Below, piece after piece: positions 20,443-62,814 of a stretch of 64,000 bases of DNA; positions within the stretch are counted from its first letter, which is position 1; the number at the start of each line of letters is the position of its first letter. The stretch is from Bugula neritina (Eukaryota; Animalia; Bryozoa): positions 5,088,233 to 5,152,232 of the forward strand of contig OZ037772.1 in NCBI GenBank assembly GCA_964035545.1, written 5' to 3'. The position numbers and the translations under genes are program-made. The notes beneath the pieces were generated by a model, which saw nothing but the letters and a program-made list of their open reading frames with translations, searched no databases and had not been told where the DNA came from.

Positions 20443-21012
20443 GGTTGTCAATATCAAAAATCATTTAAGCTTATGCATGCAATTAAGCTTGTGCAGCAGC
20501 TAAAATATTACAGTGTTAAGAGTCATTATTTTCATATAATTTTATTTTCGATTCTGTCTCTAACAATAGACTTCTCATTACTATCATATGGTCCTTTGAT
20601 TTACTATTGACTATATCCAAGTATATACAGGTTACACAATCTCAATCAATATCTCATTAAAATAAGATGACATAATATTGTAAGGAAACTTGTGTTACTG
20701 GATTGATGTTGATTATAATAAATAATGTTTTGTTGTATTTTACTTATACACTACAATTAAAACTAAATTGCATTTTTTCCTTTCATTCAAATATAAAAGT
20801 ATAATTTGTGAGCAGCTTTTGTTAAACTACAAGCTGTTTAATTAACGAGTTGTAATCACAAATCTAGCAGTTAAACTAATCAAATTTGCAAATGAATCTC
20901 TTTGGCTCGATAGTGCAACATTTACATCAGATCTGAGAAAACTCGATGCAAGTACAGCTCACTCTGTTCTTCTACTTTAAACTTCATTCAGCTGTGACGA
21001 CCAAAATTATCC

Positions 21013-21043
21013 ATGCTACACTCTTATATTATATATGCCACAG
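21013..21043 (+). pseudogene. Orphan first exon (plus upstream region) of a fourth PAN-FTLD lectin copy
   Basis: ATG...ACAG|gtacag, 31 nt (MLHSYIIYAT), same length and phase as 30003-30033 and 35076-35106; ~400 bp upstream is homologous to those genes; no exon 2 before the Gypsy fragment. Confidence 0.6.
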
Positions 21044-21459
21044 GTACAGCATAAAGAGTTTGTGTATAGCGAATACATATACTGTATATTGTGTAGTGTA
21101 TTATACAGGTACTGTTTATGATTATGTATAGTGTTACGTAGAGGTGTTGTCTAGAATGTAGTGTATTGTGCAGGTATTTTATATTATTCAGTGTATTTCA
21201 TGAAATCAGTAAGAATTAACTTATTCACAACTTCAAAGATAAAAAGTATATACTACAGGTACAGCAGCAACAATAATGGTGTTATTTTATAATAATAATT
21301 GATTTGAATTTTGAGCTGTGTTGCTACTTACTGAAACAGTATAAGTAGAAGACAACGGAAAATAATTATGTTCTTTATATTTTCTATGATAAAATACAAT
21401 TCAAAAGCTTGAATATTATTAATAAAAAATTCAAATGTCAATCAACTCTAGCTAGGCCA

Positions 21460-23520
21460 GTCTTATAAGTTGGAGATCTTAAACTCTGCAGTAGCCAGCA
21501 GTCTCAATCAGCTGACTGCGCAAAGAGAGATCTTAGTGCAGTGTGTCAACCCCTTCACGGAGTCGGTAGAGTTACCGAGAGGGTCTATACTGGGCCGTTT
21601 CCACTCTGTCCAGGAAGAGGACGTGGGGTCGTTGTTGGGAGATGCGACTGAGGGTCCCCGGACAGCGCCCGCCTAAAGGGCGGGGGACCGTCCCACCACA
21701 CATCAAGGAGTTGTACGAGGCAGCCTGCGGTGGCTGGGTGACCAACGAAGAAGGTCAGGCTATGGCGAAGTTGCTGCACGAGTAAAACGACGTGTTCAGC
21801 ACTGGAGACCATGGTGTAGGCCTGACAAGAGTCGTTTGTCATGAGATACCGCTGGCTGCGGGGACAGCTCCTATCCAGCAATCCACGAGCACGTTGGGGC
21901 TGGAGAAGAAGAAAGAGGTCAGCCGACAAGTCCCAGATCTTCCAGACCGCAGCCTCATAGAGCGATCCCATAGTGTGTAGAGCTCGCCGGTCGTCCTGGT
22001 TTGGAAAATAGACGGAAGTAGGCGGTTCTGTGTGGATAGGCCAGCAAGCATGGTCGTCTCCCTGGTGAAGTGGGACGACTGAGGTTATATGCTGCATGGC
22101 CGTGGTAAGTGATAGCTGTCGACCTGGTTGGACCCATGCCCCCTGACTCTCAGAGGCACCAGCTGGATCCTAGTATTAACTGACCACTTCACTAGGTTGG
22201 CCGACGCCCTGGCTATCCCAGACGCGTAGACTCCGACAGTGACCAGGGTGCTAAATCAACATGTATTCTGTTACTTCGGTCTTCCGAAACAGATGCATGC
22301 CGACCAAGGTGCTCAGTTCCAGTTTCAACTGATGAGTGACCTCTCCCGCTTCTGGAGAGCAAACCAGAGCAGGACTACCCCGTACCACCCAAAAGGTAAC
22401 GGGATGGTGAAGCGCAACAACCGGATGTTAGGTGATGCGCTCCAGAGTCTGCTCCTCAGGCGTAGTCAGAAGGAATGGAATACGGTGCTACCGCAGGTCA
22501 TGCGCGCGTACCGCAGCACACCACACACCAGTACTGGTGAGACTCTCAACCTCCTGATGCTCGTTTGGGAGATTCGAGTTCTCGACCACCTTACCTGTCT
22601 ACGTTTCTGAGCAGAATAGCTCAGTCCACAAGTACGCCAGTGAATTAGTAGAACGGATGAACGCCGCACACAAAATGCTGCTAGAAAAGCAGTGGCAAGT
22701 GCGGCACGAGCATTCCGACGAACCATCCCTCTATCAGACAAGAGACTGGGTGTGGATGGTAAATCACTGTAGGCGTCGTGGACAGGCTAGGCGACTAAGT
22801 TACAGCCTAAGTTTGTGAGACCCTATGTAGTAGTTGAGGCGATGCCCAACCATACCTACAAGATTGAGCGCTCAGGTCAGGTGTCTATTCAGGATGAGGC
22901 TCGCTTGAAGCCGTATTGGGCTAGCCTTGACGTTGTGGGAGAAACCCTCCATTGTTGGAGCCCCGGAGGCAGACAACAACGCGCGGGCAACAGCGGCGTG
23001 GACCGGAAGATAAAGTGGGCGTGCCGTGGGAAAAGGACCTGGCCAGAGACTACCGACCGCTTCCTCCAGCAGAAGTGCGTTCGCCGCTTCCAGCGCCAGG
23101 CCTTACATCATCACTCCCGGAACCCGAGCCGGGCCCGCAAGTGCAAATCTCCACGAAGGCTCCATCCGAAGAAAGCCAAAAAGAGCCAGTCACTAACAAG
23201 CCGGAAGCCCCGCTAGTGTAACTTGATAGTCCACCTGTGAGTGCACCACCTCCTGATCTGGAACTAGGACAGCGTACCAGACAACCCCCAGCATACTTGA
23301 AAGACTTCATATGTGACTGCGTTCAAAGCGACAATTATATAAGTCTAGCGGAAGGCCATACCGGTGGACTGTCAGTAAATTGTGGGAGTTGTTGGCCCCA
23401 CTACAAAATCAACTTTTACGAGGGCGGAGTAGTAGGCAGAGTTAATATGCCCAAGGCGAAAAAGTCCTAGTCACATGCAGCGAACACGCTGCCCAGCCTT
23501 TTCCTACGCTGACATCGCCA
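21460..23520 (+). mobile_element. Degenerate, internally deleted Ty3/Gypsy pol fragment related to the 40-47 kb element
   Basis: LVQCVNPFTESVELP, HEIPLAAGTAPI, DQGAQF, TTPYHPKGNG and PAYLKDF motifs with stops and frameshifts; jumps from the RT start (RFCVD) to integrase at ~22040. Confidence 0.9.
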
Positions 23521-23935
23521 AAGGCAGACGTGTTCTCAAATCTCATAAACAGATACTTGAATGTTGAGTATGTCTATAATTACTGAGTTCCAAAGTACGC
23601 CTGCATAGATCTAGTATTCCTATCTATGCAAACAGTTCGGTTACCAGCTAATTCTGATCTAATCGATCTGATTGAATCAGAACTACTGGAGACCGTGTCT
23701 AATGTGAATGACGATTAGGACGTAGTAATAGTTGACTATTTTTTAGATCTAGAGCTAGATGCTATGATTCTTAGCCAGTCTACACATCCGAACGCGAGCT
23801 CTCAAGTGCCTTATAAAAGAATTTGTGACATTCACACTAGTAACAGTCGATTGTCACATGAATTACTAAATGTTTTTGATATGTGTAGAAATGACGGTCT
23901 CCTTCTATGTGCTGCACCGTAGCTTATATGAGTAG

Positions 23936-23994
<59 letters not shown>

Positions 23995-24609
23995 GTATAT
24001 ATATTTACAGTTTTTAAAAATTTAATGAAGATTCGCTTTAAAATTCAGTGAAATATGATAATTCTCTTGCAGCATTTTATGGAAACGTATATCAGTTTCT
24101 AAATTTAGTGCAATCAATTATTATTTAGCTAGACCAGCTTATTTCATTACCAGATTAATTGCAAGCGTCGCCTTAGTATCTTCCATTTTAAAATTTGTTA
24201 TTCTTTTTGAAACCAGATTTTAAGCTATTAAATAAACAACTGGGAATTAGATTTAGCACAGATTCAAATTACCAATTTCATTGAAATAAAACTTATTATT
24301 CTTTTAGAAACGGAACATTGAGGTGTACATGCAACTGGGAATAATGTTTTATCACATACTCAAATAAACAAACAATGCAACAGCATATAAATCAATATCT
24401 TTTCAATACACTCCTCTCTAGGTGTCTTTATAACTGCTGATTCTCAAATGTGCATTTATGTTCTGAACAATTATTTGTGTTGAAAGTTAGTAGTTAAATA
24501 TTAATGTTGTTAAATTCCTACACAGCTGTGCTATAAGGAGACAGCTTATACTCATTTTGCGATCAGCAGTTGTACCTTGTCACACGGTTACTAGAGATAG
24601 GCAGTTATA

Positions 24610-40449: not shown

Positions 40450-41319
40450 ATGGCCGACGAGAACGACGCGCCCAGACAGGAGCCAGCAGCAGTAAAGGAG
40501 GATCACATAGGCGGCCCAGCGCTGCCTATGGACAGGTACCACTTGCGGGCTCCCATCTTCTCAGGGGAAGAAGATGTGGAGCAATTCATCACTGAGTTTA
40601 GTGATGTGGCGGACATCTGCGGATGGCCGAATAGGGTTACTCTGATCCAGCTGCGGTTATGTCTGACAGGGCCGGCTAGACCCTATGGAATAAGCCAGAA
40701 TGTCGGTGACATATTTGAAGCACTACGAGCTCGGTTTGGATTAACCGCTCGAGATGCTCGCGTGCAACTGCAGAGTCTTAGGAGAAATCCTAAGACCAAC
40801 CTGCGAGAGCATGCTACCGCAGTCGAACGACTGGCACAAGTCGCCTACAGCGACTTGCCTGCCGACAGTCGACAGAGCCTAGCACTGGATGCATTCCTCC
40901 AGTCTATTTACAACCTCGGTCTGAAACAGCATCTGCTGGTGGCCGAAGTTGAGATTATGGAGAGAGCTCTAAGGCTTGGGAATGCCTATTTCCAAGCCGA
41001 CAGTGCGAGTCGACCTGGTGCGACGATACAGCAGGTCGGGGCAGACGACGTGTCGACGTCGCCGGCGAAGACAGCTGTACAGGTCGCCGCGGCAGCAGCA
41101 GACGAATCTACTAGCTTGACCACAAGCTTGATTCGAGAACTGCTAGCCGAGATCAGGCAACTGCGCCAGCAGTCGACAGCCGAGAGACCCAGGAGGTCGT
41201 CAGTGGCTGTCGACGACAGGCGCAGCCCTGTATGCTGGGGCTGTGGTAGTGGTGGGCACTTCATACGAAGTTGCCCCCGCGGCAGTGGGAGGCGGTTAAA
41301 CAGCAATGGCCCACGGTAA
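40450..41319 (+). CDS. gag: Gag
   Basis: 289-aa ORF, capsid-like FSGEEDVEQFI...W, CCHC knuckle CWGCGSGGHFIRSC. Confidence 0.9.
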   Translation: MADENDAPRQEPAAVKEDHIGGPALPMDRYHLRAPIFSGEEDVEQFITEFSDVADICGWPNRVTLIQLRLCLTGPARPYGISQNVGDIFEALRARFGLTARDARVQLQSLRRNPKTNLREHATAVERLAQVAYSDLPADSRQSLALDAFLQSIYNLGLKQHLLVAEVEIMERALRLGNAYFQADSASRPGATIQQVGADDVSTSPAKTAVQVAAAAADESTSLTTSLIRELLAEIRQLRQQSTAERPRRSSVAVDDRRSPVCWGCGSGGHFIRSCPRGSGRRLNSNGPR

Positions 41320-42302
41320 CTTCCGCCGACCGTGGGCCCCAGTTCAACCCCCCCAAGGCAGAGGCCAAGGCCAAACCCCACCGGGTGAGGAGGCCGCCTT
41401 CGCCAGAGTGGCAAGCCCCAAGGAGAGTGAGTAGGCCGCAAGGCCCACCTAAACCTCCGGCTTGGGCACTCAAAAACCGCTTTGAAGGTTTGCTTGATGA
41501 GGGAGTGAACGACGAGTGGGAGCAAAACAGGGATTTTCCTCGGTTGCCCACACGAGCATCAGTCCGAGAATTCACTCGGCCGCCCGTGTGTGAGCGAGAC
41601 CGAGACGTAACCTGCCTGCCCACGCAACGTCGACTACCCCCTCGCAACCGAAAAGCACAGGTGCATCCCCAACTCCATGCACATGAGGTGTCGCCTCAAG
41701 AGACGAACCGCTCAGTGAGCGCTCAGCCATATGGAAGCAGCTATTTCCTCCCCGGCAAACTTGCTGGCAAAGCTGTCACATTCCTGTTGGATACTGGGTG
41801 CACCACAAATCTACTGAGTCAGCATCTATTCGACAATCTCAGTGCCAGGGACAGGGCTAGCCTAGAACCATATGAAGGGGAACACGGCACGTTGGCGGAC
41901 GGGTCGTGTATTCCTTTCTATGGGGTAATCCAGTTGACTGGTAGAGTCCGTGATCAGACGATCAGTGAGACCTTCATCGTCAGTCAACTCAAGGAGGACG
42001 CCATCTTGGGCATGCCATTTCTGAAGCGACACAGGTGCTACATCGACTTTAGCAAGTTGGCGGTAGTGATGGCCGGGCGTGAGCTGGCCCGTGTCGACCG
42101 ATTTGGCCGACCCTTGGTGGGGGGAGTGCAGGTGGTACAGCGCTGTACTGTACCTGGGCGCTCCCGGGCTACAGTTCGCTGCAGAGTGAACTGTAGAGAA
42201 ATCTCCGAGCTAGGAGTGGTAGAAGGTGCACTGGGGGGCGTCCAGCTCGCTAACAGTCTGAATAGGCTGGATGAGCGGGGGAGTTCCTGGTCCAGTGCGT
42301 AA
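41271..42302 (+). CDS. Aspartic protease region of pol
   Basis: FLLDTGCTTNLL and ILGMPFL motifs. Confidence 0.85.
   Translation: MPPRQWEAVKQQWPTVTSADRGPQFNPPKAEAKAKPHRVRRPPSPEWQAPRRVSRPQGPPKPPAWALKNRFEGLLDEGVNDEWEQNRDFPRLPTRASVREFTRPPVCERDRDVTCLPTQRRLPPRNRKAQVHPQLHAHEVSPQETNRSVSAQPYGSSYFLPGKLAGKAVTFLLDTGCTTNLLSQHLFDNLSARDRASLEPYEGEHGTLADGSCIPFYGVIQLTGRVRDQTISETFIVSQLKEDAILGMPFLKRHRCYIDFSKLAVVMAGRELARVDRFGRPLVGGVQVVQRCTVPGRSRATVRCRVNCREISELGVVEGALGGVQLANSLNRLDERGSSWSSA
41295..41338 (+). promoter_or_regulatory. -1 programmed ribosomal frameshift signal (gag to pro-pol)
   Basis: G_TTA_AAC heptamer at 41295-41301 in gag frame, 6-nt spacer, 10-bp stem GGCCCACGGT/ACCGTGGGCC; the protease ORF is in the -1 frame. 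Confidence 0.75.
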
Positions 42303-42325
42303 ATCCTTTCACGGAACCGGTAGAA

Positions 42326-45300
42326 TTGCCGGCTGGGTCTCTAGTGGGGAAGTTCCACTCCGTACAGGAGGAGGATGTAGGGCTCGCGCTGGAGACGGCG
42401 GACGAAGCCCGTGGGGTACCCACTAGAGACGGCAGGGGGCCGGTGCCTGAACACGTAGCGGAGTTGTACGAGGATGCCTGTGATGGCTGTGAGAGCAAGC
42501 GGGAACGCCTGGTGATGGCGCGGCTACTCTCTGAGTACAAGTACGTGTTTAGTTGCGGCGACCATGACATGGGTCTGACTAAGACTGTCCGTCATGAGAT
42601 ACCCCTGGCGGCGGGGACGGCGCCCATTCGGCAGCCGACCCGCCGGTTAGGTCCTGAGAAGGAGAGAGAAGTGAGCCGTCAGGTGCAAGACCTTCTGAAT
42701 CGGGACCTGATTGAGCCAGGCCATGGGGCCTGGAGTTTTCCAGTCGTCCTGGCTTGGAAAAAAAATGGTAGCTGGAGGTTTTGCGTTGACTATCGCAGGC
42801 TGAACAGCGTGACCATCCAGGACGCTTACCCTCTCCCTAGGATCGATGAGTCGCTCGATGCCTTAGCTTGTAGCAAGTTCTTCAGCACGTTGGACTTGCT
42901 AAGCGGGTATTGGCAGGTGCCCCTAAGTCCTGAAGCACAGGACAAGGCCGCATTTATAACGCGGGATGGGCTCTGGAAATGGAAGGTGTTGCCATTCGGA
43001 CTTACGTCTGCACCGGCCACCTTCCAGCGACTCATGGAGCAGGTCGTGAGTGGGCTGCACTGGAAGACCTTGCTCATCTATCTCGATGATGTCATTGTCA
43101 TCTCCCCCGACTTCGACACACATGTCAGTCGACTCAGGGAGGTGTTTGACAGGCTCCGAGCTGCGGGTCTGAAGCTCAAGCCCTCGAAGTGTGCATTACT
43201 GCAGCGCAAGGTTAAGTACCTGGGCCATGTAGTTGGTCGAGACGGGGTCGCCACAGACCCCGAGAAGGTACGGGCTGCGAGGGACTGGGCCTTCCCTGTC
43301 GACCTCCCTGAATTGCGGGCATTCCTGGGACTGGTAGGGTACTATCGTCAGTACATACCAGACTTCGCCGGAATTGCACAGCCGTTTAATCGGCTGACAG
43401 CAAAAGGGGTGCGATGGCAGTGGACGCAGGCCGAGCAGAGGGCATTTGACCACCTGAAGGATCGCCTGGTGGAAGCACCCATCTTGGCGTATCCTGACCC
43501 TGTGAAGGAGTACATTTTGGATACTGATGCCAGTAACCATAATGTGGGGGCTGTGCTATCGCAGGTCCAAGATGGTCGCGAGGTGGTGGTGGCTTACTAT
43601 AGCAAGGCCCTGTCGGCGCCTGAGAAGAACTACTGTACAACCAGGAGGGAACTCCTGGCAGAAGTCAAGGCGGTCAAACACTTAAGACCATATCTATATG
43701 GGCGTACATTCCGGCTTCGGACGGATCATGCGTCTTTGATATGGCTGTGTCGACGGGCGGAACCATCAAGCCAAGTGGCGCGATGGCTAGAGATCCTGGC
43801 AGAGTTTTCTTATCGGATCGAACATCGACCCGGTAAGAAACACGGTAATGCCGATGGACTCAGCCGCCGCCAGGCAGATGGGTGTAAGCAGTGCCAGAAT
43901 ATTGAGCGCAGGGACGGTGGAACCCCTCGCTCGGACGTTGAAGCGCAGTTGGGGAAAGCGAATGTATACAGCTGGGAGGAAGGGCAACTCTTGTCCAAAC
44001 CTCCCAACGAAGTTGTTAACAACCTTCACGCAAACCCCACGCTGCTCAGGAACGTCAGGGAGCTATGTCGGCTCCAGGCTACGCTACTAGGGGTGGTAGC
44101 TGACCTAGTCCGGGCCAAGAAGGAAGGACGGCGGCCGAGTGAGGCCAAACAGCGAGTGAAGAGTGCAGAGTTTAAGTACTTCTGTGACCGCTGGTACTCC
44201 CTCAGGTTCAAAAGCGATGGGCTGCTAATGATCACGTTGGCAGCCGGCACCAATTGCAGTGAACGAGAGAGGGTAGTTTGCCCGTCCGCTCTGAGGCGGG
44301 AGTTGATCTGGGACACCCATAAGCAAGCTCACGCAGGAGCTAGCCGGGTGACTAGGTGTCTTCAACTCCAGTGGTTTTGGCCCGGTATGACCCTGGATGC
44401 CCGACTCCGGGTGCGGAAGTGCGAGGTGTGCCAAGCTAGCAAGCATGGCCGCCCCACTGAGACCGCAGGGAGGCGTCGCCTCCATGCCGGCCGTTCGTGG
44501 CAGGTAGTTGCTGTCGATCTGGTAGGCCCCATGCCCACAACAGCGAGAGGTAATAACTGGATACTGGTATTAACTGACCATTTCACGCGGTGGGCTGATG
44601 CACTGGCTATTCCAGATGCGTCGGCCCCCTCGGTGGCCAGAGCCTTGGACCAGCATGTGTTCTGCTATTTCGGCTTGCCGGAGCAGATACACTCTGATCA
44701 AGGCGCCCAGTTTCAGTCGCAACTTATGAGCCATCTCTGTAAAGTGTGGGGGGTAAACCAGAGTCGGACGACCCCGTATCACCCGCAAGGGAACAGGGTT
44801 GTGGAGCGGAACAACCAAATGCTAGGGGACTCTCTGAGAAGCCTGCTTATCGGTAGGAGCCAGGAAGAGTGGGACTTGGTGTTGCCGCAGATCATGCGAG
44901 CGTACTGTAGTACCCCTCACTCCAGTACACTGGAGACCCCTAATTCTCTCATGCTGGGGAGAGAAACCAGGGTTCCTGAGCACGTAACCTATCATGTTCC
45001 GACTCCCGAGAGCAATGTCCACGATTACGTGGACAAGCTCGTAAAATGCATGGGGACGGCTCACGAGGTGCTACGTGAGCAGCAGTGGCAGGTCAGAAGT
45101 GGTGACCCTGACGACCCCCCCTTATACAAGGTGGGAGACTGGGTCTGGATGACCAGTCATCGCCGACGGCGCGGACAGGCAGCCAAGTTGCAGCCGAAGT
45201 TCGTAGGTCCCTACTGCGTAATTGAGGTAATGCCAAATCACACCTATAAAGTGGAACGGTCTGGACAAGTGTCGATCCAGAACGAGGCACGACTAAAACC

Positions 45301-45844
45301 TCACTGGGCAAGTCCTGATGCGGCGGGTCAAGCACCTCCTCTCTTAGAGCCTGCTAGAAGCCCTCCTATGAGGGGGCGAGGCATAGCGTATCGAGAGATT
45401 GAGGAGATACTGCCAGATCAGGACGGGGTGGCCGACGCGCCGCCCAACCAGCCCCAGCCACCTCCACCCCAAGAGGAGGAGGCCGACACACCAGAAGACC
45501 TGTCAGAGCCGGCCCCACCACCTGTGGAGCCGGTCGACAGGCCCATCGCCCCGGATGAGATGGAAAAACCTCAAAATCATGAGGAAGAGGCAGCTAGGGG
45601 AGGACCACCCGTACTGGTGGACCCCCCCGTACTGGCGACACCACTCGTGGTGGAAGAGTCACCAGTCGTAGCAAATTCCCCAGTGCAGTTGGAGCGTAGG
45701 CAACGCACTAGGGCGCCTCCATCTTATTTAAAAGATTTCTTGTGTGATGCAGTAGAAAAACATCCATCAGCTATCATAAAAGAAATCTGGGGAGACGAGC
45801 AATTGAGAGTTGCGTTTCCGAGATATAAGAAGACGCAATTGTGA
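42326..45844 (+). CDS. pol: Pol: reverse transcriptase, RNase H, integrase
   Basis: WRFCVDYRRLN, LPFGL, YLDD, TDAS, H-x4-H...C-x2-C, VDLVGP / SDQG / ERNN; separated from the protease frame by a 1-nt loss in the G-run at ~42277-42281. Confidence 0.93.
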   Translation: MPAGSLVGKFHSVQEEDVGLALETADEARGVPTRDGRGPVPEHVAELYEDACDGCESKRERLVMARLLSEYKYVFSCGDHDMGLTKTVRHEIPLAAGTAPIRQPTRRLGPEKEREVSRQVQDLLNRDLIEPGHGAWSFPVVLAWKKNGSWRFCVDYRRLNSVTIQDAYPLPRIDESLDALACSKFFSTLDLLSGYWQVPLSPEAQDKAAFITRDGLWKWKVLPFGLTSAPATFQRLMEQVVSGLHWKTLLIYLDDVIVISPDFDTHVSRLREVFDRLRAAGLKLKPSKCALLQRKVKYLGHVVGRDGVATDPEKVRAARDWAFPVDLPELRAFLGLVGYYRQYIPDFAGIAQPFNRLTAKGVRWQWTQAEQRAFDHLKDRLVEAPILAYPDPVKEYILDTDASNHNVGAVLSQVQDGREVVVAYYSKALSAPEKNYCTTRRELLAEVKAVKHLRPYLYGRTFRLRTDHASLIWLCRRAEPSSQVARWLEILAEFSYRIEHRPGKKHGNADGLSRRQADGCKQCQNIERRDGGTPRSDVEAQLGKANVYSWEEGQLLSKPPNEVVNNLHANPTLLRNVRELCRLQATLLGVVADLVRAKKEGRRPSEAKQRVKSAEFKYFCDRWYSLRFKSDGLLMITLAAGTNCSERERVVCPSALRRELIWDTHKQAHAGASRVTRCLQLQWFWPGMTLDARLRVRKCEVCQASKHGRPTETAGRRRLHAGRSWQVVAVDLVGPMPTTARGNNWILVLTDHFTRWADALAIPDASAPSVARALDQHVFCYFGLPEQIHSDQGAQFQSQLMSHLCKVWGVNQSRTTPYHPQGNRVVERNNQMLGDSLRSLLIGRSQEEWDLVLPQIMRAYCSTPHSSTLETPNSLMLGRETRVPEHVTYHVPTPESNVHDYVDKLVKCMGTAHEVLREQQWQVRSGDPDDPPLYKVGDWVWMTSHRRRRGQAAKLQPKFVGPYCVIEVMPNHTYKVERSGQVSIQNEARLKPHWASPDAAGQAPPLLEPARSPPMRGRGIAYREIEEILPDQDGVADAPPNQPQPPPPQEEEADTPEDLSEPAPPPVEPVDRPIAPDEMEKPQNHEEEAARGGPPVLVDPPVLATPLVVEESPVVANSPVQLERRQRTRAPPSYLKDFLCDAVEKHPSAIIKEIWGDEQLRVAFPRYKKTQL

Positions 45845-49005: not shown

Positions 49006-52000
49006 TCACTTGTCTCGGAGTTGTCTCCAGCCACCACTCTGGTGAATAATCAGATCTCTGTGGTTATCAAAGTATTCTATCAGCCAATCAGCAATCAGAT
49101 GAACAAATTTCAAATCACAGCTGTTTGCCTGTATGTAGGTACTCTGCTAGTCTGCAGGTAAAGATGATGGCCTACAAATTCAAGTTTCAAACAGGTTCAT
49201 CATTAAAGACCGATGGGTGGATTTACTATATGAGAATTTATTTTAAAATCTAAATGCTGTGTTAGAACATAACAATGTTGTTTCATCCGGTCATTGATAT
49301 AACAGCCACTTTTTAAAAAAAGTAATTTTATAACTCCTTAATGTAATTGAAGACTGCATGATGCGATTTGTTTTGAAGGTAAATTCATCAGCATAATATA
49401 CAGGTTGGCGACGTAGTGCAGTTAAATATAGTTTAATTTTTAATGAACAGATTACAGCAGCTTGTAGCACTATACTTAGAACTATACTGAGTTGGTGTTT
49501 TGGAGCAATTAACACAAGTATATAGCAAATTAAGGATTATATAGTAAACAATAATTATAAATTCAACTTAATTATTTGTTTGTGTTTGATGTGTATGTTT
49601 ACCAAATAAGTAAACTAGGCAACCTATTGGATCATGTATATAGGTACAATGTTATAATTTTACAAAAGTATTTTCATATGTATCTATATTTACATATTAC
49701 TTTATTTTGTACACATCAGCAAATTATGACCAAAAATTGAAGCTATAAAATTAAATTCTTGAAAATTTACGATATGGAGTATTTTTGTGTCTTGAATTTA
49801 ACTATACATAATAAAGAAACCGGAAAGAGGTCCAACATTAAAGTGAAACATCACTGAAATTTAAGCGGAATCAAAAAACACTTTGATTATCCAGTTGTGT
49901 TTGTTAATATTTCATTACGTTAGGAAAACTCCCTTCCCATATACATTAACTAAGCTAAATTAATAAAAACAACTAAAAACCAGAAATATTGAGTGTGAAA
50001 TAACCTGCACTCACCCTCATAGTCCTGTTCCATGTTGGGAGAGAAAGTATATCTTCTAAAGCCATGTAGAAATGACATTTAAAGTTAGCCAGTGTGTTAG
50101 AGCCTTCAACGTACTCTGTATAAAGGTCAGATGCCTTGACAGCGTCATATATTGCTTGATTAAACATCTGGTCATAGCAGGTAAACACTGTGAAAGGACA
50201 TTCAACCAGTTATTTATGAGTTATTTACAGGTTAAAGAATAACTTGCTAGGTAACACTTGAATTGAATGCATTGTATACCTATAATAATATAATTTGAAT
50301 GCAGTGTAATATGGTATAGAGCTATATAAGATATAAGATATTCTAATATAAAACAATAATATTATAATGATAATAATATAATGATATAGCAAGATGTGTT
50401 AGAAAGAAATAGTATAGTAAACTACTATAATAATGATATAAAGTAAATATTATAAAAATAATATAATAAAATAATAATATAAATGGTTCAATAAATAAAC
50501 TTTCTTAAAAAATCCCCCCCCCCCTCCCCTATGCTTTTAACAATTAACTAATCCAATGTACTTGATAATAAATATAATTATCTGTATGATTTTATGATCA
50601 ATTTGCTATCATGTTATATAGTTTTTTAGAGCTATTTGCTTGAAAACTCATGCATGTAAAATGAATGACTATAATTCTGTCAATTTTAGTAATATATAGC
50701 TGTCTTTAAATTTAGATGCGTTCAAGATTGATTATAAAAACGAAAAAAAAATAAAAATATTAGGTTAGAAAAAGTAAGGCAGCTGAAACGGTTTTCCAAT
50801 TCAACTATATGTTTACTAAACTTTAGCATTGCAAAAAGAGAAATTTAAAAGTTAGGGTGCCTTTGCTCTTAACTGTTTGGAGAATATAACAACTACACTC
50901 ACGGTAATTGTGGAGTCTACTGATGATCGGGTCTTCAGAATAATCTATAAGGTTCTTAAAGACAGGAACTTCTAAGTTTCCATTTGGAAAAACAATGGCG
51001 GCCTTGTGGCTTAGACTAGAAAAACAACAATAATAATTATAATAACATGTGGCAATATGAATATATAATAAAATACAGTTTTTTAAATTTCTTATTAAAA
51101 ATATTGTACAATAACTTGCAAGTTTATTTATTGTAGTTATATAATACAAGTTAAAAATAAAGCCGCATGACAAGTAGGGGAAACCCGGGTGATATGGGCC
51201 ACTTAAGCCCACAGCCCAGGCTGACTATGGTTGATTGAAAATTATTATTTCATCATGTGGGTGCTATCTCTACTGACATACAAACTGAGTTTGAAGCTCC
51301 TATACAGATGCTTAACTGAGCTATAATTGAAAATTAGTGGACCATATCACCCGAGGATTTTTTGAAATTTCGGGTGATATGGGCCACCACAGACTCCGTC
51401 ACATAAAGTCAGCTTTTTTGTGTTGAAAATGCATTTTGCTATATTAAAAAGTAACATAAAACAATAGATTTAAAATAAGTGTGTAACAGCTTCTTTTAGT
51501 GCCTCCTAACTCCAAGCATTTCAAATATTTTTGAAAGAATATCTTGGCATTTAAAATACATTGCATGAGTATGAATATTTCAAGCACACATTATACAGCA
51601 ACTGGCTATATTGTTGTCTAATCATATTTAGAAGTTTAATGCTTCATCATTTTTTGAAACACTTGAGAAATAGTATTATTTTTCTTCAAACAAGTATATG
51701 AATAGAAAAATTCACGGTCCATATCACCCCCCAAGTGGCGGTCCATATCACCCAAAAATTATGTCACCAAAAATTTTGAATTCCTACAGGCAGAGAGTGG
51801 ACAAGTATTATATATACTATTTGGGTATTTATACATACCTTCCACACATTATCTGTAGATACAGGCCCCTTACTTCAGGTAATTTTTTTCAATGAAAATA
51901 TATCCACAAAATTTGTGAAAAGTTATAAGAAAATGAGCAAAAAGAGAAAATGTGTCTTTATTTTCTAAGACAAAGAGACAAGTCTAAAATATGTAGACAG

Positions 52001-52372
52001 GGAGTTAGATATTCCTATTTCTAAGCAATGAGACACTTTTCAACTTTCTGGTAGCCTTGGATACTGCAAAACATGCATGGTCCATATCACCCGGGTGGTT
52101 CATATCACCCAGGTTTCCCCTATATAGATATAGGCTAGCCTCTGAAATATAATTATACATGCATCAAGAGTCAATGCACTAAAGGTGCATGTCTATATCT
52201 TGCAATTTCTTTAACTTTTCAACTCTTTTAACTTTACTACATTAAGATAAGATTATTACTATTTGGATAGAAATGATTTAATAATATCAGAACTATAAAT
52301 CACTTCTCCTTTTGATAGCCCCAGTTCTTTTAGCATGAGGCACTTTGGGTGGCCGGCACCTAAGCGATCCAT
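49006..52372 (-). pseudogene. Inverted paralog of the Bcl-2-like gene, frameshifted in its last exon
   Basis: Exons 52372-52260, 51015-50903, 50187-50015, 49171-49006; the last exon is 166 nt versus 162 nt because of a 4-nt CTAC insertion near 49135, giving a stop before the BH2-like GGW. Confidence 0.75.
51177..52120. mobile_element. Non-autonomous Tc1/mariner-pogo-type TIR element
   Basis: TIRs GGGGAAACCCGGGTGATATG / CATATCACCCAGGTTTCCCC; TA on both sides; repeated internal CCATATCACCC motifs; absent from the left-arm paralogous intron. Confidence 0.85.
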
Positions 52373-52947
52373 TTTTGATAATCTTTTAGTTTTTCTATAT
52401 TATATCAATGACCAACATTTTTGGTTATATAAAAAGACTTTTCTAAGTTTTTTGACAAACACGTAATATATTTTTCAAAGGAATGTGTTGCGAAATGTTT
52501 GAAAAATTTCAACAAAGCTTTCAAGCTTAGCTATATATACACTGCAATGAAAGCTTTTTGCAAATTATATAAAGCTGTCTACAGTACACTCAGTGCTAGC
52601 TTAAAAACTCTGGCACTAATTGGCAATAGCTGCAGTGCTAGTGAACTAGTTTTTACAGAAAAAAGTAAAGAATTTGCTAAAATATTGTTGAATACAATTG
52701 TTAATATTGTTTATTTATTTTAAAGGTTATAGTAATGATTATATAAGTTTTTGAATTGATTGTAGCCTTAACATTCTCATCCAGGTGTTATATTGGTGTA
52801 TTGTAATTGATAAAGAAAATAATTGAATGACTGAAGGTCAAATTAAAATCACTATAAACCAGCATGTTTGACTTAGACTGAAGGGTTTCTCCAGTTTTTG
52901 AAATAACTATGAATGTGTGAAATGTGAAGAAAATTGAAATAAGAAAA

Positions 52948-52956
<9 letters not shown>

Positions 52957-53014
<58 letters not shown>
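52957..53014. repeat. (TA)n microsatellite
   Basis: Direct. Confidence 0.95.
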
Positions 53015-53017
<3 letters not shown>

Positions 53018-54593
53018 GCCATATGTTTATTGATCCTTGGTCTTTCTTACCAACTGGGAAAGTTAGGTTTGGAAGAGTTTTCACAAATATATACCTTTTA
53101 ATTTATTGTATTGAAATATTAACTTTATTCCTTTGTCCTTCAAATGCATGATGTTGTTAAATTTCTACAAATCTTATAAACAAGATATACAAAATTTGTT
53201 GGCAACTTGAATTTCATTTGAAGTAAGACAAACTGGTAAAACCAAACACCACGTTTTACAAATTTCTCATACCTTCAACAAAATTATAATATGTTTGTAT
53301 TTAACATCCCAAAAGTTCAAGCAATATTTTTATTAAAAGACTATTTTTTAGTGAATTTGATATAATTGAATTTAATACTTATTCTCACTTCATGTTCTAA
53401 ACAATTTATTGCGAAGCTATAGCATAGAATTTATTATTCTTGATATTTAGAAAATTTTTATTCACTTTAATAATAAAAAAATTTACACGCAGGAGTTTTA
53501 GCATAATATTTGGGCCATAGATTCAAAATCAAATTAGCACCACTAAAAAAGTAAAAATGAATCTCTACCTAAACTGTAAAATCACCGTTGGCACAAGACA
53601 AGAGAGAGAAATAGCAAAACAATATTAACTACAAAATACAAAAATTCAAACGCTTGACACATAGGACATGTAAAATAGACTCAAATCAAAATATAAAAAA
53701 AATTATGTACATTTCTTAGAGATTCCTATGGTCTAAAAATTCTTTATAACTATAACACGGTTTATTCTAGAGCCACAATATATAAATAATCTAACTTATG
53801 TATATTTATAATTAGTAATAAATAGTAATGATGTGTTAAAATAGTTTTGATGCGCAAGACATTAGCAATAATGCCAAATTATAAAAATCTAGTGACAATT
53901 TGATACAAAATAAATTTAACCGCGTTTAAAAATCACTTGCTCACTAAATTCAATGCATGATAAATGATTTATACAATATAATATATACGTATAATAACTA
54001 TATAGCCAGTTCAAGAGAAGAGATGAAAGTAGGAAAGGTTTTGTACAAATACAACAGCAATGTGTCTAATTATCCCTGCAGTATGTACATCTATTACTAA
54101 TATTGTTTGAACGCTTCTTTCAAAACAGAAGTTAGTTTAAAATATTTTATAGTCAAACTTTAACAGTAAGTCTCTCTACTTTTCAATGAAACGGTTAATA
54201 ATTTTTGTTCTCGTATAACAAGTATAATAGACTAAAATATAACTCAAATATTTACAGTTGCTATGCAGTTAAAATAAGTATAACATAATATTTCCAGACA
54301 TATAATTGCATATTTTAGTTGACATGGCATATATATGAAATTATTATCTAACGTGACATGCTATTTCAGATTATAATGCTAAAAGATGACTTCACTATTA
54401 TACATGAAATTCTATGCATTGTCAAATGCTTTGAGCAGTGAGTGTAAGATTGTCATTTTAATAGGCTAATATCTAACTTTGGCAGTTATATAGAGCAATT
54501 CAATTGGCTAGTATCTGACTATGCCAGTTATGTAGGTGGAGCATTTCAATTGGCTAATATTTGTGAACGTCCTTAGCTGTAGTATTTGGTATT

Positions 54594-56565
54594 CTATTTT
54601 CTGACTCTTGTTTTCACAGCTGTAGACACGCCTTTTCTCATAGCTCCTCCCGCTCCACTACTTCCCATTCTATTGTAGTTACCTCCCCCTACACCCTGAA
54701 AACAAAATTAATCTCATCAACTACAAGCTTTATTCATGCAATTGCAAGATATTTGCATCACAGAGCTGAAATTAAAACAATATGCAACAAGACTAAATAC
54801 TGTGTTTTTAAAAATAATTTTATGTGTAAGATGTAACATTACATATCATTTAATATGCTGCACTATATCATTATAATATATAATATATTACATGTTATAA
54901 TATTGTGATGTGCTATTCTTATGACATATATTATGCTATAATAAATATCATTTTGAATTAAGTCAACTTATCACTATATGCAGTTTGACTTAGTAGATCA
55001 GAGTATGTTATTAATTTGTATTATTTTATTGCGTAAATTGGATAATGACAACCTTGGCTATGATTCTAAGATAAGCATTGAGTGTAGCTATACTAGAGAA
55101 CTTACCAGTGACACTCACTAATAGTCTTCCCAGCTAGTATAGTATCAATTAGTAATAAACAGTAGTATTATAGCTAGTAATGTTGAGTAACATTACTATT
55201 TAGTAGTATGACAACTGGTAATGTTAAATAGCAGTAAAACTAATTAATAGTATTATAGTACCAACTATACAGTAAAAGCAGCAACTAATAGTAGTACTAA
55301 CTAGCACTAGTACTAACTATAGAAGTAGTACTAACAAGTAACAGTATACTAACTATAGTAGTAGTACTAAATGGTTGTAATACTAACTATACTAGTAGTA
55401 CTAAGTAATAGTACTAATATATAGTAGTACTATATAACTAGTATAACCTGACTCAAAGCTGCTACTCACTGTGTTTGTGGTACCCACTCGGTACGGGTCG
55501 GTAAAATTGCTAAAACCTTTTCCCCTTGGACCATTATCTGCAAACTTGCCCATGTAGTTCTTGTTGGTGCTGTACTGGCTGTTGTAACCAGGAAGCTTGG
55601 TGTCTGTAAACAGCATTATTAGTGGCCATTAAAAATGTCTTTAGATCGAAAAGATAAAATATTTCATTTAATTGTTCAAATTTCAACACTCAATAATCAC
55701 TTTGGCTCTATTAGGAATACAAATAGACAACTATAATTATGGTAAATATAGCTAAATCATTAATAGCATGTGCAAGCAATATACTAAATGTTTGCTCATA
55801 TAATTTATGACATAACAAGTGTAAAAAGAACAATGTACTATTTGTATATATTAAAGTTGGGCAAATGGGGGCCCAGGGGCACCTGGAGCCCCTTGTTTAT
55901 TTGTCAGTGGTCTTTTTAATGCTTAAGATAGGTAAAGACTGTTATATGCATTATAATTAGCACAGCAAAAGTTTGGTGACAAACTACTTTATTATAAAAA
56001 ATTCCACATGTGTTCAATCATGTAGCCCTTCGTTTTGGCTGACATTTGAACCTGGCCCTCATACAAAAGAAGTAGCCCATATCCTTGCTATATAGTACGT
56101 TCTCATTCAATTACTTGTAATTTGATTATAACTTACAATTGTAGATTGTAATATATTAGTAATGTAATTTTTTTTTCATTTCAGCCATTTTGAAAACTCA
56201 TCAATAATTTATTTGTATCCTATATAAACTGTATTCTTTATTTTATTGACCTGCAATAATTGTAGAGTTCGGTCTATCCAAAATCATTTAGGAACAGTAG
56301 TGGAGAAATTGAGATAGCCTAAGTTCTTTAAATTTTGTTATAACTTTTGGCTTGGGGTGCAAGTTGAAATTTTAGCGAGAACATAACTTATTTTACTACA
56401 TCTCTAATCTAGATCACAGGCTTGTCTCAAATTCTCCATTACTGCACCTACCCCTCCAAAATCAAGTCTTTAGATACTGAAAAACAATGACTCACTGTTT
56501 TTGTTTTTATCTTTAGCAATCAGGGCAGCTGTAGGTGCATCTTCAGAGTCCAAGGGGATTGGTTG
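54594..56565 (-). CDS. In-frame C-terminal extension of the innexin beyond the TGA (readthrough and/or alternative donor)
   Basis: 56565-56496 (QPIPLDSEDAPTAALIAKDKNKN, A|gtgagt), exon 55603-55470 (NTKLPGYNSQY...RVGTTNT|gtgagt), exon 54695-54594 (GVGGGNYNRMG...KTRVRK*); phases 1 and 0 match and there are no internal stops. Confidence 0.7.
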
Positions 56566-59500
56566 TCATAAGGGGTTGGTTATTCGAACCTCCTCACCCC
56601 CGGGGTCGTGGGTCGCACCCAGTAGCTTCGGCGCATTTTTATCTGGAGCAATTGGTGATTCTGGACGAAATATCTTGGAGCGGTATGCCACAAAGTTGTC
56701 GTACATAGCTGTCACTATCTCACCTGGAAACAGACATACATAATAGAATAAAACAACTGCCCATTTATTTGTAAATTAACTTGCATTGAATTTGGGATAA
56801 ATATTAATTTTCAAAGAACATTTTAGCGAAAGTTGTGTATAATATGCTGTTGTCATAATGTTGAGGAAATAACTTGATTCGTTCATCAATAATTAACTTA
56901 GGAGTCAGAAAATTTAACTGGCTTAAAGATTAACCAAATGCAAGACCTGTTACTAAATAATAAACCAATAGTTGAATCTGTAACCTAATTACTGACTAAA
57001 AGGCAAGTCTGTAGCTAACTAATTAACCAATCATTGAGTCTGTAACTAAATAACCAACAAATAGTGAGGTATGTGACTAAATAACTAACCAATCATTGAG
57101 TCTGTAACTAAATAACCAACCAATAGTGAGGTCTGTGACTAAATAACTAACTAATCATTGAGTCTGTAACTAAATAACTAACCAATAGTGAGGTCTGTGA
57201 CTAAATAACTAACCAATCATTGAGTATGTAACTTAATAACTAACCAATAGTCAGGTCTGTGACATTCTTAGATATAAGCCAGAGTACCAGCACTCCATCT
57301 AGCCTGAGATATCTCTGTACAAAATCTCTCCTTAGCTCCTTTTCATATGGATTATTTCTCCCCATTATTTTTAGATATTTGCTAACATATCTGTAATAAA
57401 AGAATATTCAGAGTGCATTGTAATTCTCTGAAGCTACAGTTGTAAACGCATATCAAATTAAATACTTTTGTTTTATTACACGGTTTTAGAACTGATGCAC
57501 CAACATTGTACATAACATATACAGCCTATTTATATATAATGTCCTGTAATAGAGACAGATCAAATAATGACCCAAAATAAATACAAGTTAGAAGGAAGTA
57601 TTCAACTACATTTATAAAAGAGTTTTGCTTTTTTTAAATGATATAATTTTTTCATAAATACGACATCAATATTCACTCTTTTATGAGTTAATGTAAAATT
57701 TTCAAATGCTATAACAAGTGCCGATTGATAGGAAAAAGAACTTCAGTTCTTGATTGACGTAAAGTAGTTTGCAGTAGCTGTAGCCTTAAACACATGTAAA
57801 AAGATAATTATTGTTCTTGCTTAAAATTTGTGTTGAATTTTCTACCTTTTGTTGAGTGGTGCTATAAATATAGGTATGTAGGTAAGGAGGCCAATGATGG
57901 ACATGGTGGCTACCAGACAGTTCCACCACCAGAGGAACAGGTAAATCTTCTCATTGAACAGGTTGATGGGGAGGACACACTGCACCACGTACTGGTGGAT
58001 ATTGTCTCCTAGTCGGCGAATCTGGAACAGGTAATCAGGTTTAAGAAATTGATCAGAACTTCAAAGTTTGAGTTCTTTAACCATACAATTGTAACTTAAA
58101 ATTTCTTACAAAATTTAAATTTTAACTTTTCTTCAAATTATTTTGATTATTTTAAAACATCAAACAACTTTTTTTCGCTTTGGGCTTTTTAGACTTGAAT
58201 ATCAAATTTTCTTTTTGAGATTATTTCATTCATGAGACATATTTCTGCAAAAAGGTTTTGATCGGAATTTAGCAAGTAAATGTAAAAAATTGAAGCATAG
58301 AATATTTATCATTATTCAGCCTGCATCTTACAACTGAATATAATTTTGCCTCCACTGGGAATCGAACCCGAGACCTCTGGCTTGCATGCAAGTGTGCTAA
58401 CCATTGCACAACTGGGACCACTCGGTTAAACTCATCACTACATACAATAACGAGTTGTACCTTAAAGTAACAGAGTGTCACTCTTGGGAAGAATGGACTT
58501 TCATGCCACTGCTCTCCTTTAATGGCTAACATTAGTACATTGTAGCCATACATTGTGTAGCCTTGGCCAATTATAGCATTCATCAGATAGAGTTGACCAA
58601 CCGCATTCCCTGTAACAGAAAGAGCAGATTCAATTCACGTGACTAACACTACATGAGTCACAGCTGGAAGTCAGAGAAGTCTTCTAGTAAAATTGCAATC
58701 TCCTTTTAGTCCATTTTGAATTTTGATGACAATGTTTTACAAGTTACAGTGAAGGAATAAATAAAAAATCTTCTCAGTAAATGTTGAAAAGGCAAAGTAA
58801 AAAGACTCACCTATAAAGCAGAGTTTAACTATGAAGTAAACCAGAACAAGATGGCAGCCATATCTCTTACCAAACCGGATGTTGGCTTTATTCTCCATCT
58901 TTTTTCTTGCATTAGCAAACCACCCTGTACAATGTAATTGAGCAAATTAATGAAGCATGCTTGGCCTTGTGAAAAAATAAAATTACCTTACCACCTATAT
59001 TATATCACTATATTTTTGCTTCAAATTGCTTTTTATTGTTTTTAGCTGAATAGCTGGAATGGTATTTGCTTTTTAGTATTTGATGAGACTTTGACGTTTT
59101 GATTTGATACTCTGTTTAGTTGCAGATAATTCAACATAATGTATGATAATATCTATATACGTTTAACTTGCTAAGTGAAATAGATTCTGTTTACAAACTA
59201 TTCTGTCACCACATGTAACTGGCATAAATGTTTCATAAATTGAATTTCATAAAATAAAATTTTGAAGCAGTGTGAATGCATAATCGAAATTTAAATTATA
59301 TGCATCAATGCTAGCGTTTTAAGCAGTTTACTCTTCCTTCATTACAGAAATCAGCTTAAGAGATATTAGAAAAAAATTTAAATTAAAATTTAGTTGGTTT
59401 TCATTCACGGAGTGACACAGGACATAGTAAACATGAATAACACATAAATGACTAATTACGTAGACATTAGATTTGGTGGAGAGGTTGATGATGAAGTTAT

Positions 59501-61982
59501 TTTACCTCTTCTGTACTCTTATTGGTTCCCTAGCAACCAATTCTCCTTGTAGTATCATTGGTTCCCTAGTAACCTAACTTTTCTGTGCCCCCATTGGTTC
59601 CCTAGTAACCTACCTACTCTGTATTCTTATTGGTTCCCTAGCAACCTACCTACTCTGCAGTCTCATTGGTTCCTTAGTAACCTACTTTCTCTGTATTCCC
59701 AACAACCTACCTTCTCTATACTCCCGCCTGTATCCTAGCAACCTGTCCATTTGATTACTAATAAACTTTATTAGTCTGTCTCTGTTCTCAGGGTTTATAT
59801 TTTCTGGAGAGTTGCACATCTGGACAGCTCGGTTTACTCCATAACCTGAAATAATTTGTGAGGGAAAGTTATTCTCATTATAACCTAAATGTAATTGTTT
59901 ATTCTGACAATAAAATTTATTTGCTAACTTTGTTACTTTTGAGCAACGAAAACTCTCATGAAGTTAGCATTAAGTCTTAGTGCGCTGTGATATGAGTGGG
60001 CTAAAGGAAGTAAACATCAATTGCTAAATTTTTTTAGCTACTTTTTAAAAATATAACATTTTTCTTTTGTAGAAAAAAAAAAATTTTTAATCTACATATA
60101 GCAGTTTACCATAAGGCGGATTGGTGTAGATATGTTATAGCATATATAGATATTATGTTATAGCAGAGGTATGCTATAGTAAAGCTATGATATAGTATAT
60201 GACAATGTGCTACAGTACAAACATGTTATAGCAGAGGTATGCTATAGTAAAGCTATGATACAGTATATGACTATGTGCTACAGCACAGACATGCTATAGC
60301 ATCTCACCTGCATGATGGGTTGCAAACCCCCAACAGATACTTGGGAAGGCGAAGAGAAATGCCTGCATGACCAGTATAAGGGGAGTCCACTGGTAGTAGC
60401 TAATTTCATTGTCATACAGATTTATATCATCCGCCCCTGAGAAAGATTAGTAAAAATATTATATATATATATGTTTTCTATCATCATCGAATTATAATAT
60501 AAGTCATAGCATAGTGTATATATCGGCATATCCACTGTAGTGTTGAGTTTACCCAGTGGCCTCCGTGGTGTAATGGTTAGCACACTTGCTTGCAAGCCAG
60601 AGGACTCAGTTTCAATTCCCAGTGGTGGCAATTATTTTACATCCACCTATATGTCTTTCAATAGCATTGCAATACGTTATATGGTATAAACTATAATATT
60701 TAGTGTGCATCCGGAATGGATAATGCAGTGATGAGTTTACTCAGTGGTCCAGGGGTGTAATGGTTAGCACACTTACTTGCAAGCCGGAGGTCTCTGGTTC
60801 GAATCCCGGTGGGGGCAATTATTTTACACATAATGCTTTTAGATAAGTTTCTTAGCAGCATATGTATTTTCTATTAAATCTATTTTCACTTTGATTATGT
60901 ATAGAATCCTCACATAATATGATATCATTTTGGTTTTAATTAATGGCTTTTTCAATTTATAAAGTCCAAATTAGTTTAATACACCATAATATTATTTACC
61001 AATACGAAGTTGTGCCCTCTTACCTGGAATACTTTGATCAAAGGGAACGTAGTATGTGTTCTTAACCCAACACAGTCTGTCTGTATACCGCACCCATTGT
61101 CCGTTGAATTCTGATGGTGTCCAGCAATCAATAGGATCCCCAGCAAACTGGCCTACAAAGTGTTGAAGTAATTTTCAGAATTTCATGCAATTTTATTAAA
61201 ACCGCTTTAATGCACAAAGATGTCTTTTGTATACACATCTCCCTGATTGGACTTATACAAATTTTGGTAATTTGATTGGTGAATTTGACATGTCAAACTC
61301 ACTAATCAAATTACCAAATTTTGCAGTGAGAAAGTTTTGACTACTTTTTATTTTACTATCTCAAACCACCACATCATTTATTGAACTAAGTTAGTTTAAA
61401 AACAGAATAAAAATCTGTCCAATCACATGGAAGAAAATCTGCATGTACCTGAGCAACACCAGCTCGTAAAGAGGTTTATAACCAACGTGCTAGACTAAAC
61501 TGCTAATGTTGTCTTTCTACATATTGTGACTTCTTTGCATTCCCACAAGATTATGCTTTTTATGCCGAAATTATATTCCCAAATTACATGCTGCCAGTAT
61601 ATCATGTCAAGGTAAAGTATCTTCAGGTAAACATACATGTGGAGGCAATCCCAACTGGGGATAAAATCCTACCGGTGGTTACAACAAACCCACTTGTGGA
61701 CACAACCTCACTTGTATGTAAAGACAAGCCCACTTGTATGTAAAGGCAAACCCACCTGTATGTATAAAACAATCCCACCTGTATGTAAAACAAACTTACC
61801 TTTATGTAAAGCAAACTTACCTATGTGGATACAATAAAGACAAACTCACCTGTGGATACAATGACCGCAAACACTATGCAAAGGGCGACAGAGTAACGAC
61901 TGGATATTCTATCAAAGAAGTCGTCATCCCCATGTTTTAATAGCCTCAAACCTTTGTTCAAAGCGTCTAAGATTCCTGACAT
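56566..61982 (-). CDS. Innexin (invertebrate gap-junction protein), 422 aa to the first stop
   Basis: Exons 61982-61850 (MSGILDAL...DDDFFDRISSRYS), 61152-61024 (GDPIDCWTP...CWVKNTY), 60436-60308 (YYQWTP), 59845-59711, 58924-58811, 58609-58461 (FPRVTLC), 58021-57846 (QCVLPINLFNEKIYLFLWWW), 57390-57245 (YLRLDGV), 56723-56566; all phases compatible. Confidence 0.95.
56930..57263 (-). repeat. 31-bp tandem array copied from the innexin exon-8 end + donor site
   Basis: Unit GTCACAGACCTCACTATTG|GTTAGTTATTTA versus exon end GTCACAGACCTGACTATTG|gttagttattaa. Confidence 0.9.
58335..58442 (-). mobile_element. Solo tRNA-containing LTR
   Basis: TGTAGTGATGAG...GGTTCGATTCCCAGTGGAGGCAAAATTATATTCA; tacaa present at both flanks (1 nt offset on one side). 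Confidence 0.65.
59500..59745 (-). repeat. ~37-bp tandem array related to the innexin exon-4 end + donor site
   Basis: Unit GGTTGCTAGGGAACCAATAAGAATACAGAGTAG|GTAG versus exon GGTTGCTAGGATACAGGCGGGAGTATAGAGAAG|gtag. Confidence 0.8.
60536..60641 (+). mobile_element. Solo tRNA-containing LTR with perfect 5-bp TSD
   Basis: tccac|TGTAGTG...ATTTTACA|tccac. Confidence 0.8.
60724..60828 (+). mobile_element. Solo tRNA-containing LTR
   Basis: gataa|TGCAGTG...ATTTTACA|cataa; clear A-box-like sequence and B box GGTTCGAATCC. Confidence 0.75.
61625..61862 (-). repeat. ~22-bp tandem array copied from the innexin exon-1 end + donor site
   Basis: Repeated ...ACAG|GTGAGTTTG / ATAG|GTAAGTTTG / ACAG|GTGGG units, including a second ATTGTATCCACA. 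Confidence 0.8.
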
Positions 61983-62707: not shown

Positions 62708-62814
62708 TGTAGTGTTAGATGTAAAAACTAGTCGCTGTGGTGTAATGGTTAGCACGCCTGCTTGCATGTTAGAGGATTCAGGTTCGAATCCCAGTGAAGG
62801 CAATTTTTTTTATA
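62708..62814 (+). mobile_element. Solo tRNA-containing LTR with perfect 5-bp TSD
   Basis: agtac|TGTAGTG...TTTTATA|agtac; a partial inverted copy lies at ~62440-62518. Confidence 0.75.

Follow-up and report, generated by a model that had tools for sequence, protein, structure and literature searches.

The window that we analysed is the whole 64,000-nucleotide (nt) stretch of the Bugula neritina genome at positions 5,088,233 to 5,152,232 of contig OZ037772.1 (assembly GCA_964035545.1), and the element in question is an innexin gene on its minus strand, the reading frame of which is interrupted by an in-frame UGA. The gene has 11 exons and runs from an ATG at 61982 to a TAG at 54594, with introns that are all of the GT-AG type. 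Exons 1 to 8 lie at 61850-61982 (133 nt, a length identical in the bryozoan Watersipora), 61024-61152, 60308-60436, 59711-59845, 58811-58924, 58461-58609, 57846-58021 and 57245-57390. In exon 9 (56496-56723), a TGA at 56568-56566 (codon 423) closes the 422-codon innexin frame and is followed by CAA CCA. Past this stop the frame remains uninterrupted for 70 nt, or 23 codons, up to a phase-1 donor after 56496, and it continues through exon 10 (55470-55603), where the most conserved block of the tail lies at about 55562-55482 (GKF..D.GPRG..FS.F..PYRVG), and through exon 11 (54594-54695), which encodes a Gly-rich stretch, then a basic end, and carries the second stop. The open frame beyond the UGA thus amounts to 101 codons across three exons, for a full product of 524 amino acids (aa). 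The TGA with its CAA CCA, the donor, the two further exons and both lengths had been given by a first-pass annotation of the window, and all of these coordinates were reproduced here.

By its sequence, the 422-aa product is an ordinary innexin. Exons 6 and 7 match the Pfam Innexin family (PF00876; 173-223 and 229-278, respectively) with 41 and 59 bits against a curated cut-off of 25, and the closest named protein, the 422-aa innexin of Watersipora subatra (P0005), is 77% identical, has equal lengths for its first eight exons and itself matches Caenorhabditis elegans INX-6 (PDB 5h1q) at 5e-49. It is the tail that sets the gene apart from this family. No Pfam match and no convincing ESM Atlas match was obtained for it, Rfam likewise gave none for the tail or for the stem described below, and the library, Pfam and ESM Atlas searches found no relatives of the tail beyond one orthologue group. 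For these database searches we used single exons or natural database sequences (L019:2-769, P0001 and P0005); the joined, spliced model of the window served for local computation. The genome (216 Mb) contains 44 innexin matches, and one of these paralogues is matched at 94-100% in most exons by a protein recorded for B. neritina (P0010); exon 10 is single-copy in the genome, and neither the stop-CAA context nor a similar tail occurs in the other innexins that could be read (nine intron-poor loci; L011, L013 and L016).

The search with exon 10 found P0001, a protein encoded on a spliced Logan contig (L019) of a sibling lineage. This contig begins in exon 4 and extends into the 3′ untranslated region (UTR); it retains the TGA and uses the donor at 56496 and both later junctions. 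A second spliced contig (L026), from a distant lineage and found by pattern search, has the same layout with a tail of 91 codons. Since two spliced contigs carry the UGA together with the same junctions, the UGA is not an assembly error. Thirteen probable RNA runs from four studies contain 6-7% of the words of the region, which would be consistent with expression in a lineage that has diverged a little.

Six sequences could be compared: the window, L019, L026, the L020/L027/L028 lineage, Watersipora (L023) and L030-L032. The codons UUA UGA CAA, with the UGA at 56566-56568, are unchanged in all six; in one further lineage (L021, L022), exon 10 alone was found. In a tree of the innexin core, from which L020/L027/L028 and L021/L022 were left out because they hold too little of it, the five rows carrying the UGA form one clade (support 100/99) that is sister to P0006 and P0007. 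These sister proteins end with TAG-A and TGA-A, and what follows is unlike the tail, but their contigs run only 13 and 60 nt further. For P0007, the frame past TGA-A is open for the remaining 20 codons of the contig (L025:1481-1543), a stretch that does not resemble the tail either but is too short for a verdict. The RefSeq protein of Watersipora ends at 422 aa, that is, at the UGA, which agrees with the stop-keeping mRNA being the normal one; exon 11 of Watersipora was not found in the 2.2 kb following exon 10. In the L020/L027/L028 lineage, exon 9 is interrupted ahead of the stop by an additional intron (L028:319-933).

Beyond the stop, the window and L019 differ by 16 synonymous and 2 non-synonymous codon changes, the same ratio as ahead of it (22:3), and a neutral expectation for the 16:2 is rejected (binomial P 4e-9). 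In frames +1 and +2, the corresponding counts are 1:16 and 1:17, with 4 and 8 stops. Tail comparisons between distant lineages gave ratios of non-synonymous to synonymous differences (pN/pS) of 0.26-0.42. Judged from these substitutions, the tail is evolving as protein. Conservation of the TGA-CAA in related species and coding constraint downstream were the comparative signs that the first-pass annotation had said should be sought; the former is there in all six sequences and the latter both at close range and at distance. A frameshift was rejected, as the signal is in frame 0. The same evidence bears on four other readings, namely an assembly error, a rare null allele, an intron-bearing but non-coding 3′ UTR, and a separate downstream frame reached by re-initiation. 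Gene callers do give the tail as a small open reading frame (ORF) of its own (P0001), as the last of these would have it. However, the TGA is present in every lineage read, including L019, L026, Watersipora and L030, on which ground we rejected the error and the null allele; coding-type substitutions are confined to frame 0; and no in-frame downstream ATG is shared, L026 and the readable part of Watersipora having none at all. To these four readings together we attach almost no weight.

Directly past the UGA we found a potential long-range stem whose two arms lie in different exons. After a 7-nt spacer (56559-56565; CAACCAA, or CAACGAA in L030), the bases at +8 to +19 (56558-56547, exon 9) are complementary to the codons for G-P-R-G in exon 10 (55532-55521). 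In each of the six spliced sequences, no helix is longer and no fold better than this stem, which has 10-12 base pairs, an energy of -18 to -24 kcal/mol, a loop of 107-125 nt and a mean pair probability of 0.78-0.99. It begins at +8 or +9, or 7-8 nt past the UGA. Its energy was reached by 0-2 of 600 synonymous-codon shuffles, and the fold of the L019 segment had a z of -2.3. Codon choice is also held more tightly here than around it: at conserved residues, 8 of 9 codons are identical in the spacer and arms, versus 11 of 46 elsewhere (P 4e-4). At one position of the helix, four sequences have U-A and L019 has U-G, while L030 has C-G through a substitution that replaces Leu by Ser in the protein; at a second position, L026 has U-G. 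In the pre-mRNA, the arms are separated by an intron of 892 nt in the window, 305 nt in L030, about 2 kb in L020 and 7.6 kb in Watersipora, but they are 120 nt apart in the mRNA; therefore, the helix most plausibly forms in the spliced mRNA. The consensus fold also contains a second small hairpin over the D-P-Y-R-V-G codons (window 55482-55503 and orthologues), for which the support is weak and mixed.

Constraint on exons 10 and 11 would also be accounted for, with no recoding, if splice forms avoiding the UGA were the sole source of the tail and the stop-keeping mRNA gave just the 422-aa protein. Three such routes are in frame in the window: a splice from a donor after 56598 to exon 10 (490 aa), the removal of 56597-56541 as an in-frame mini-intron of 57 nt, and skipping of exon 9, since the exon 8 donor and the exon 10 acceptor share phase 1. 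The upstream donor (GGG/GTGAGG, 56592-56600 on the minus strand) had been offered as a competing explanation in the first-pass annotation. It does exist, would give the 490-aa product, and scores 6.1 bits in the window and L019, in the lower range of real donors by a small matrix built from 27 of them. Its use found no support: neither spliced contig uses it, both retaining the stop, and the best upstream phase-1 donors in the four other lineages score 4.2, 0.8, 1.5 and -3.6 and stand at non-matching places. As for the mini-intron, real acceptors have a median score of about 7.4, but those just past the stop lie between -3.3 and 3.5; its length in L030 would have to be 39-45 nt, and the shortest real intron seen has 72 nt. 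When the whole library was searched with the tail, six matches were obtained, all of them fragments from this orthologue group in which the tail is not attached to an innexin; neither this search nor the word searches yielded a protein in which the two are fused, although such a protein could be concealed by clustering or among left-out records.

It is the piece of exon 9 past the stop that distinguishes readthrough from splicing. Its length from stop to donor is 67, 70, 73 or 85 nt, in each case frame-keeping and stop-free. In its codons 7-23, third positions hold 17 of 30 differences, and among three copies of one lineage it shows 0 differences in 67 positions, their introns differing by 4.5-8.6%. 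No bypass route explains this frame-keeping, the invariant UUA UGA CAA or the stem. Splicing as the sole source of the tail thus appears improbable to us, while the 490-aa product may be a minor form in Bugula.

The stem itself invites two other readings of the UGA. One is A-to-I editing, in which the duplex would act as an ADAR substrate and UGA would become UGI (Trp) in part of the mRNA; a conserved duplex adjoins the codon, the consensus fold permits a weak extension around it, and edited minor forms would vanish from contigs. However, an A is read in both contigs, it sits outside the conserved helix, which is short, and it is preceded by a 5′ G, which ADARs disfavour. We regard editing as more improbable still than splicing. 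The other is that the UGA encodes selenocysteine, for which a conserved in-frame UGA with a stem directly 3′ would be suitable; some selenoprotein mRNAs have redefinition elements with a stem just 3′ of the UGA. However, when the 3′ UTRs from L019, L026 and L029 and window 51500-54720 were compared with Rfam, no selenocysteine insertion sequence (SECIS) was matched even at E values up to 1-5, with the caveat that the UTR contigs may be incomplete. The site has no Cys or redox motif, and we know of no innexin selenoprotein, so that this reading ranks slightly below editing in our estimation.

Based on these findings, we propose that the innexin UGA is very probably subject to programmed stop-codon readthrough. 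Most ribosomes would stop at the UGA and give a major subunit of 422 aa. A fraction would read through, helped by the weak UGA-C context and by the stem placed at the mRNA entry channel, and would give a minor subunit of about 524 aa with a near-cognate amino acid at the UGA; Trp, Arg and Cys are the residues inserted in UGA readthrough, and one of these would be expected here. Splicing of intron 9 would complete the stimulator stem. Such a leaky UGA with two products was the central claim of the first-pass annotation, and it is strongly supported by the conservation, the spliced contigs and the coding constraint. Comparative identification of readthrough asks for a stop that is kept in spliced mRNA and across species, for in-frame coding constraint past it, and for no conserved splice bypass or downstream start. 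At this locus the stop is kept in both respects, the constraint is in frame 0 only, and no conserved bypass or start was found, the last point being judged from the scores of donors and acceptors and from the two spliced contigs rather than from counted junctions.

Several observations weigh against this proposal, for which the case is a comparative one. Assembled contigs drop minor forms and would hide isoform ratios, as well as editing or alternative splicing at low frequency. With the UGA 70 nt ahead of one junction and another intron further on, the mRNA has an arrangement that commonly attracts nonsense-mediated decay (NMD). Taken by itself, the post-stop segment of exon 9 is borderline in its constraint (P 0.06-0.07 per pair), and the first six codons past the stop are frozen and so carry no coding signal of their own. 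In the stem, Watersipora and L030 lack one or two of the end pairs, and the covariation comprises one compensatory event and two wobbles, which makes it supportive, not conclusive.

Among known readthrough systems, type II has the layout of this site, with a UGA and a long stem-loop that starts about 8 nt 3′ of it, type I being a stop followed by CARYYA (PMC3542737). With the type II cases (alphavirus replicase, coltivirus VP9 and tobravirus) it shares the UGA-C, a stem about 8 nt 3′ of the stop and a long loop; it differs from them in being a spliced cellular gene, in carrying the triplet CAA in all sequences in place of CUA or CGG, and in having the stem's arms in separate exons (PMC3542737). 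The innexin site would thus have type II geometry with a CAA triplet, and a stimulatory role for its stem is predicted. The first-pass annotation had taken the signal to be the tobacco mosaic virus (TMV)-type CARYYA. CAA CCA does fit this motif in five of the six sequences, and the type I motif can stimulate UGA as well, but natural type I cases are mostly UAG and need no structure (PMC3542737); moreover, the motif is broken in the most divergent orthologue (L030-L032), which reads UGA CAA CGA. What is kept is UGA-CAA and the long-range stem, and CARYYA was set aside as the signal. The same annotation's echo between a pre-stop and a post-stop motif (IAPDKN and IAKDKN) is not kept by the other lineages, and we do not regard it as meaningful.

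In insects, readthrough genes are recognised by a UGA with C as the next base, by conservation of the stop and by a conserved structure 3′ of it, and the authors who described them ask that splice and restart explanations be excluded (PMC5100048). The abundant readthrough of insects, including that of Drosophila hdc, is like the innexin case in its conserved UGA-C, in a coding signature after the stop and in conserved RNA structure no more than about 100-150 nt 3′ of it; the innexin belongs to another phylum and its extension crosses two introns (PMC5100048). No innexin name was found in the supplements of that paper, which may list only transcript ids. In vertebrates, AQP4ex and L-MPZ are reported as forms of oligomeric or junctional membrane proteins that gain a longer cytoplasmic C-tail through readthrough, with AQP4ex controlling anchoring (PMC6444679, PMC7070019). 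These proteins are unrelated to innexins.

The tail is rich in Gly, Asn, Thr and Lys, with the one conserved block in exon 10 and a basic end that is conserved in four sequences. Its cytoplasmic location follows from innexin topology. It may be, more speculatively, that this low-complexity tail binds a partner through its conserved aromatic-rich block, and that a minority of long subunits changes how each channel is anchored, trafficked or gated, in a manner like that of AQP4ex with aquaporin-4; by this analogy we would guess at such a role, and the C-tails of innexins and connexins are known to set these same properties. The stop context of AQP4, for comparison, is UGA-CUAG, and its readthrough tail is much shorter. 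A bolder scheme, which we find conceivable but somewhat less likely than its opposite, is that the stimulator is built by splicing: removal of intron 9 or the choice of exon 10 would switch on the long subunit and couple splicing, NMD escape and recoding, the tail being a conserved interaction module that changes the place or function of the innexin channel.

Readthrough in innexins was not found to be reported in the open-paper literature. If our proposal is right, the locus would provide the first conserved readthrough isoform in the innexin/pannexin family, as far as this literature search reaches, and one of the few readthrough cases documented in a lophotrochozoan. Readthrough with a 3′ stem is already known; a stimulator split between exons is new only to our knowledge, no search having been aimed at it. 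The gene would offer a compact, testable case, and a cellular one, of a long-range stimulatory stem that covaries in nature and has its arms in separate exons. It also points to an annotation gap: the RefSeq model from Watersipora ends at the UGA, and we found no database protein in which the tail is joined to the innexin.

Of additional note are features of the non-coding parts of the gene and of the rest of the window. The 3′ UTR, to the extent reached by L019 (53995-54593, minus strand), diverges from that contig by 12.6% and holds a 42-nt tandem repeat at 54454-54560; the matching region (L019:1100-1260) has about one extra unit, as a 49-nt insertion. Tandem repeats start just past the donor in five of the innexin introns (61699-61872, 60154-60301, 59510-59698, 56947-57263 and 55283-55445), and in introns 1, 4 and 8 the repeat unit copies the donor-like sequence itself, generating runs of decoy GT sites. 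Short copies that, judged by eye, resemble a tRNA-derived short interspersed element lie in introns and upstream of the gene (about 58340-58440, 60560-60630, 60750-60820 and 62730-62800). Elsewhere, a GC-rich island at 21000-24000 contains a 170-aa ORF without a Pfam match, and another at 40450-45844 on the plus strand resembles a long terminal repeat retrotransposon, with a gag-like ORF, an aspartyl protease ORF and a 1172-aa ORF for reverse transcriptase, RNase H and integrase in separate reading frames.

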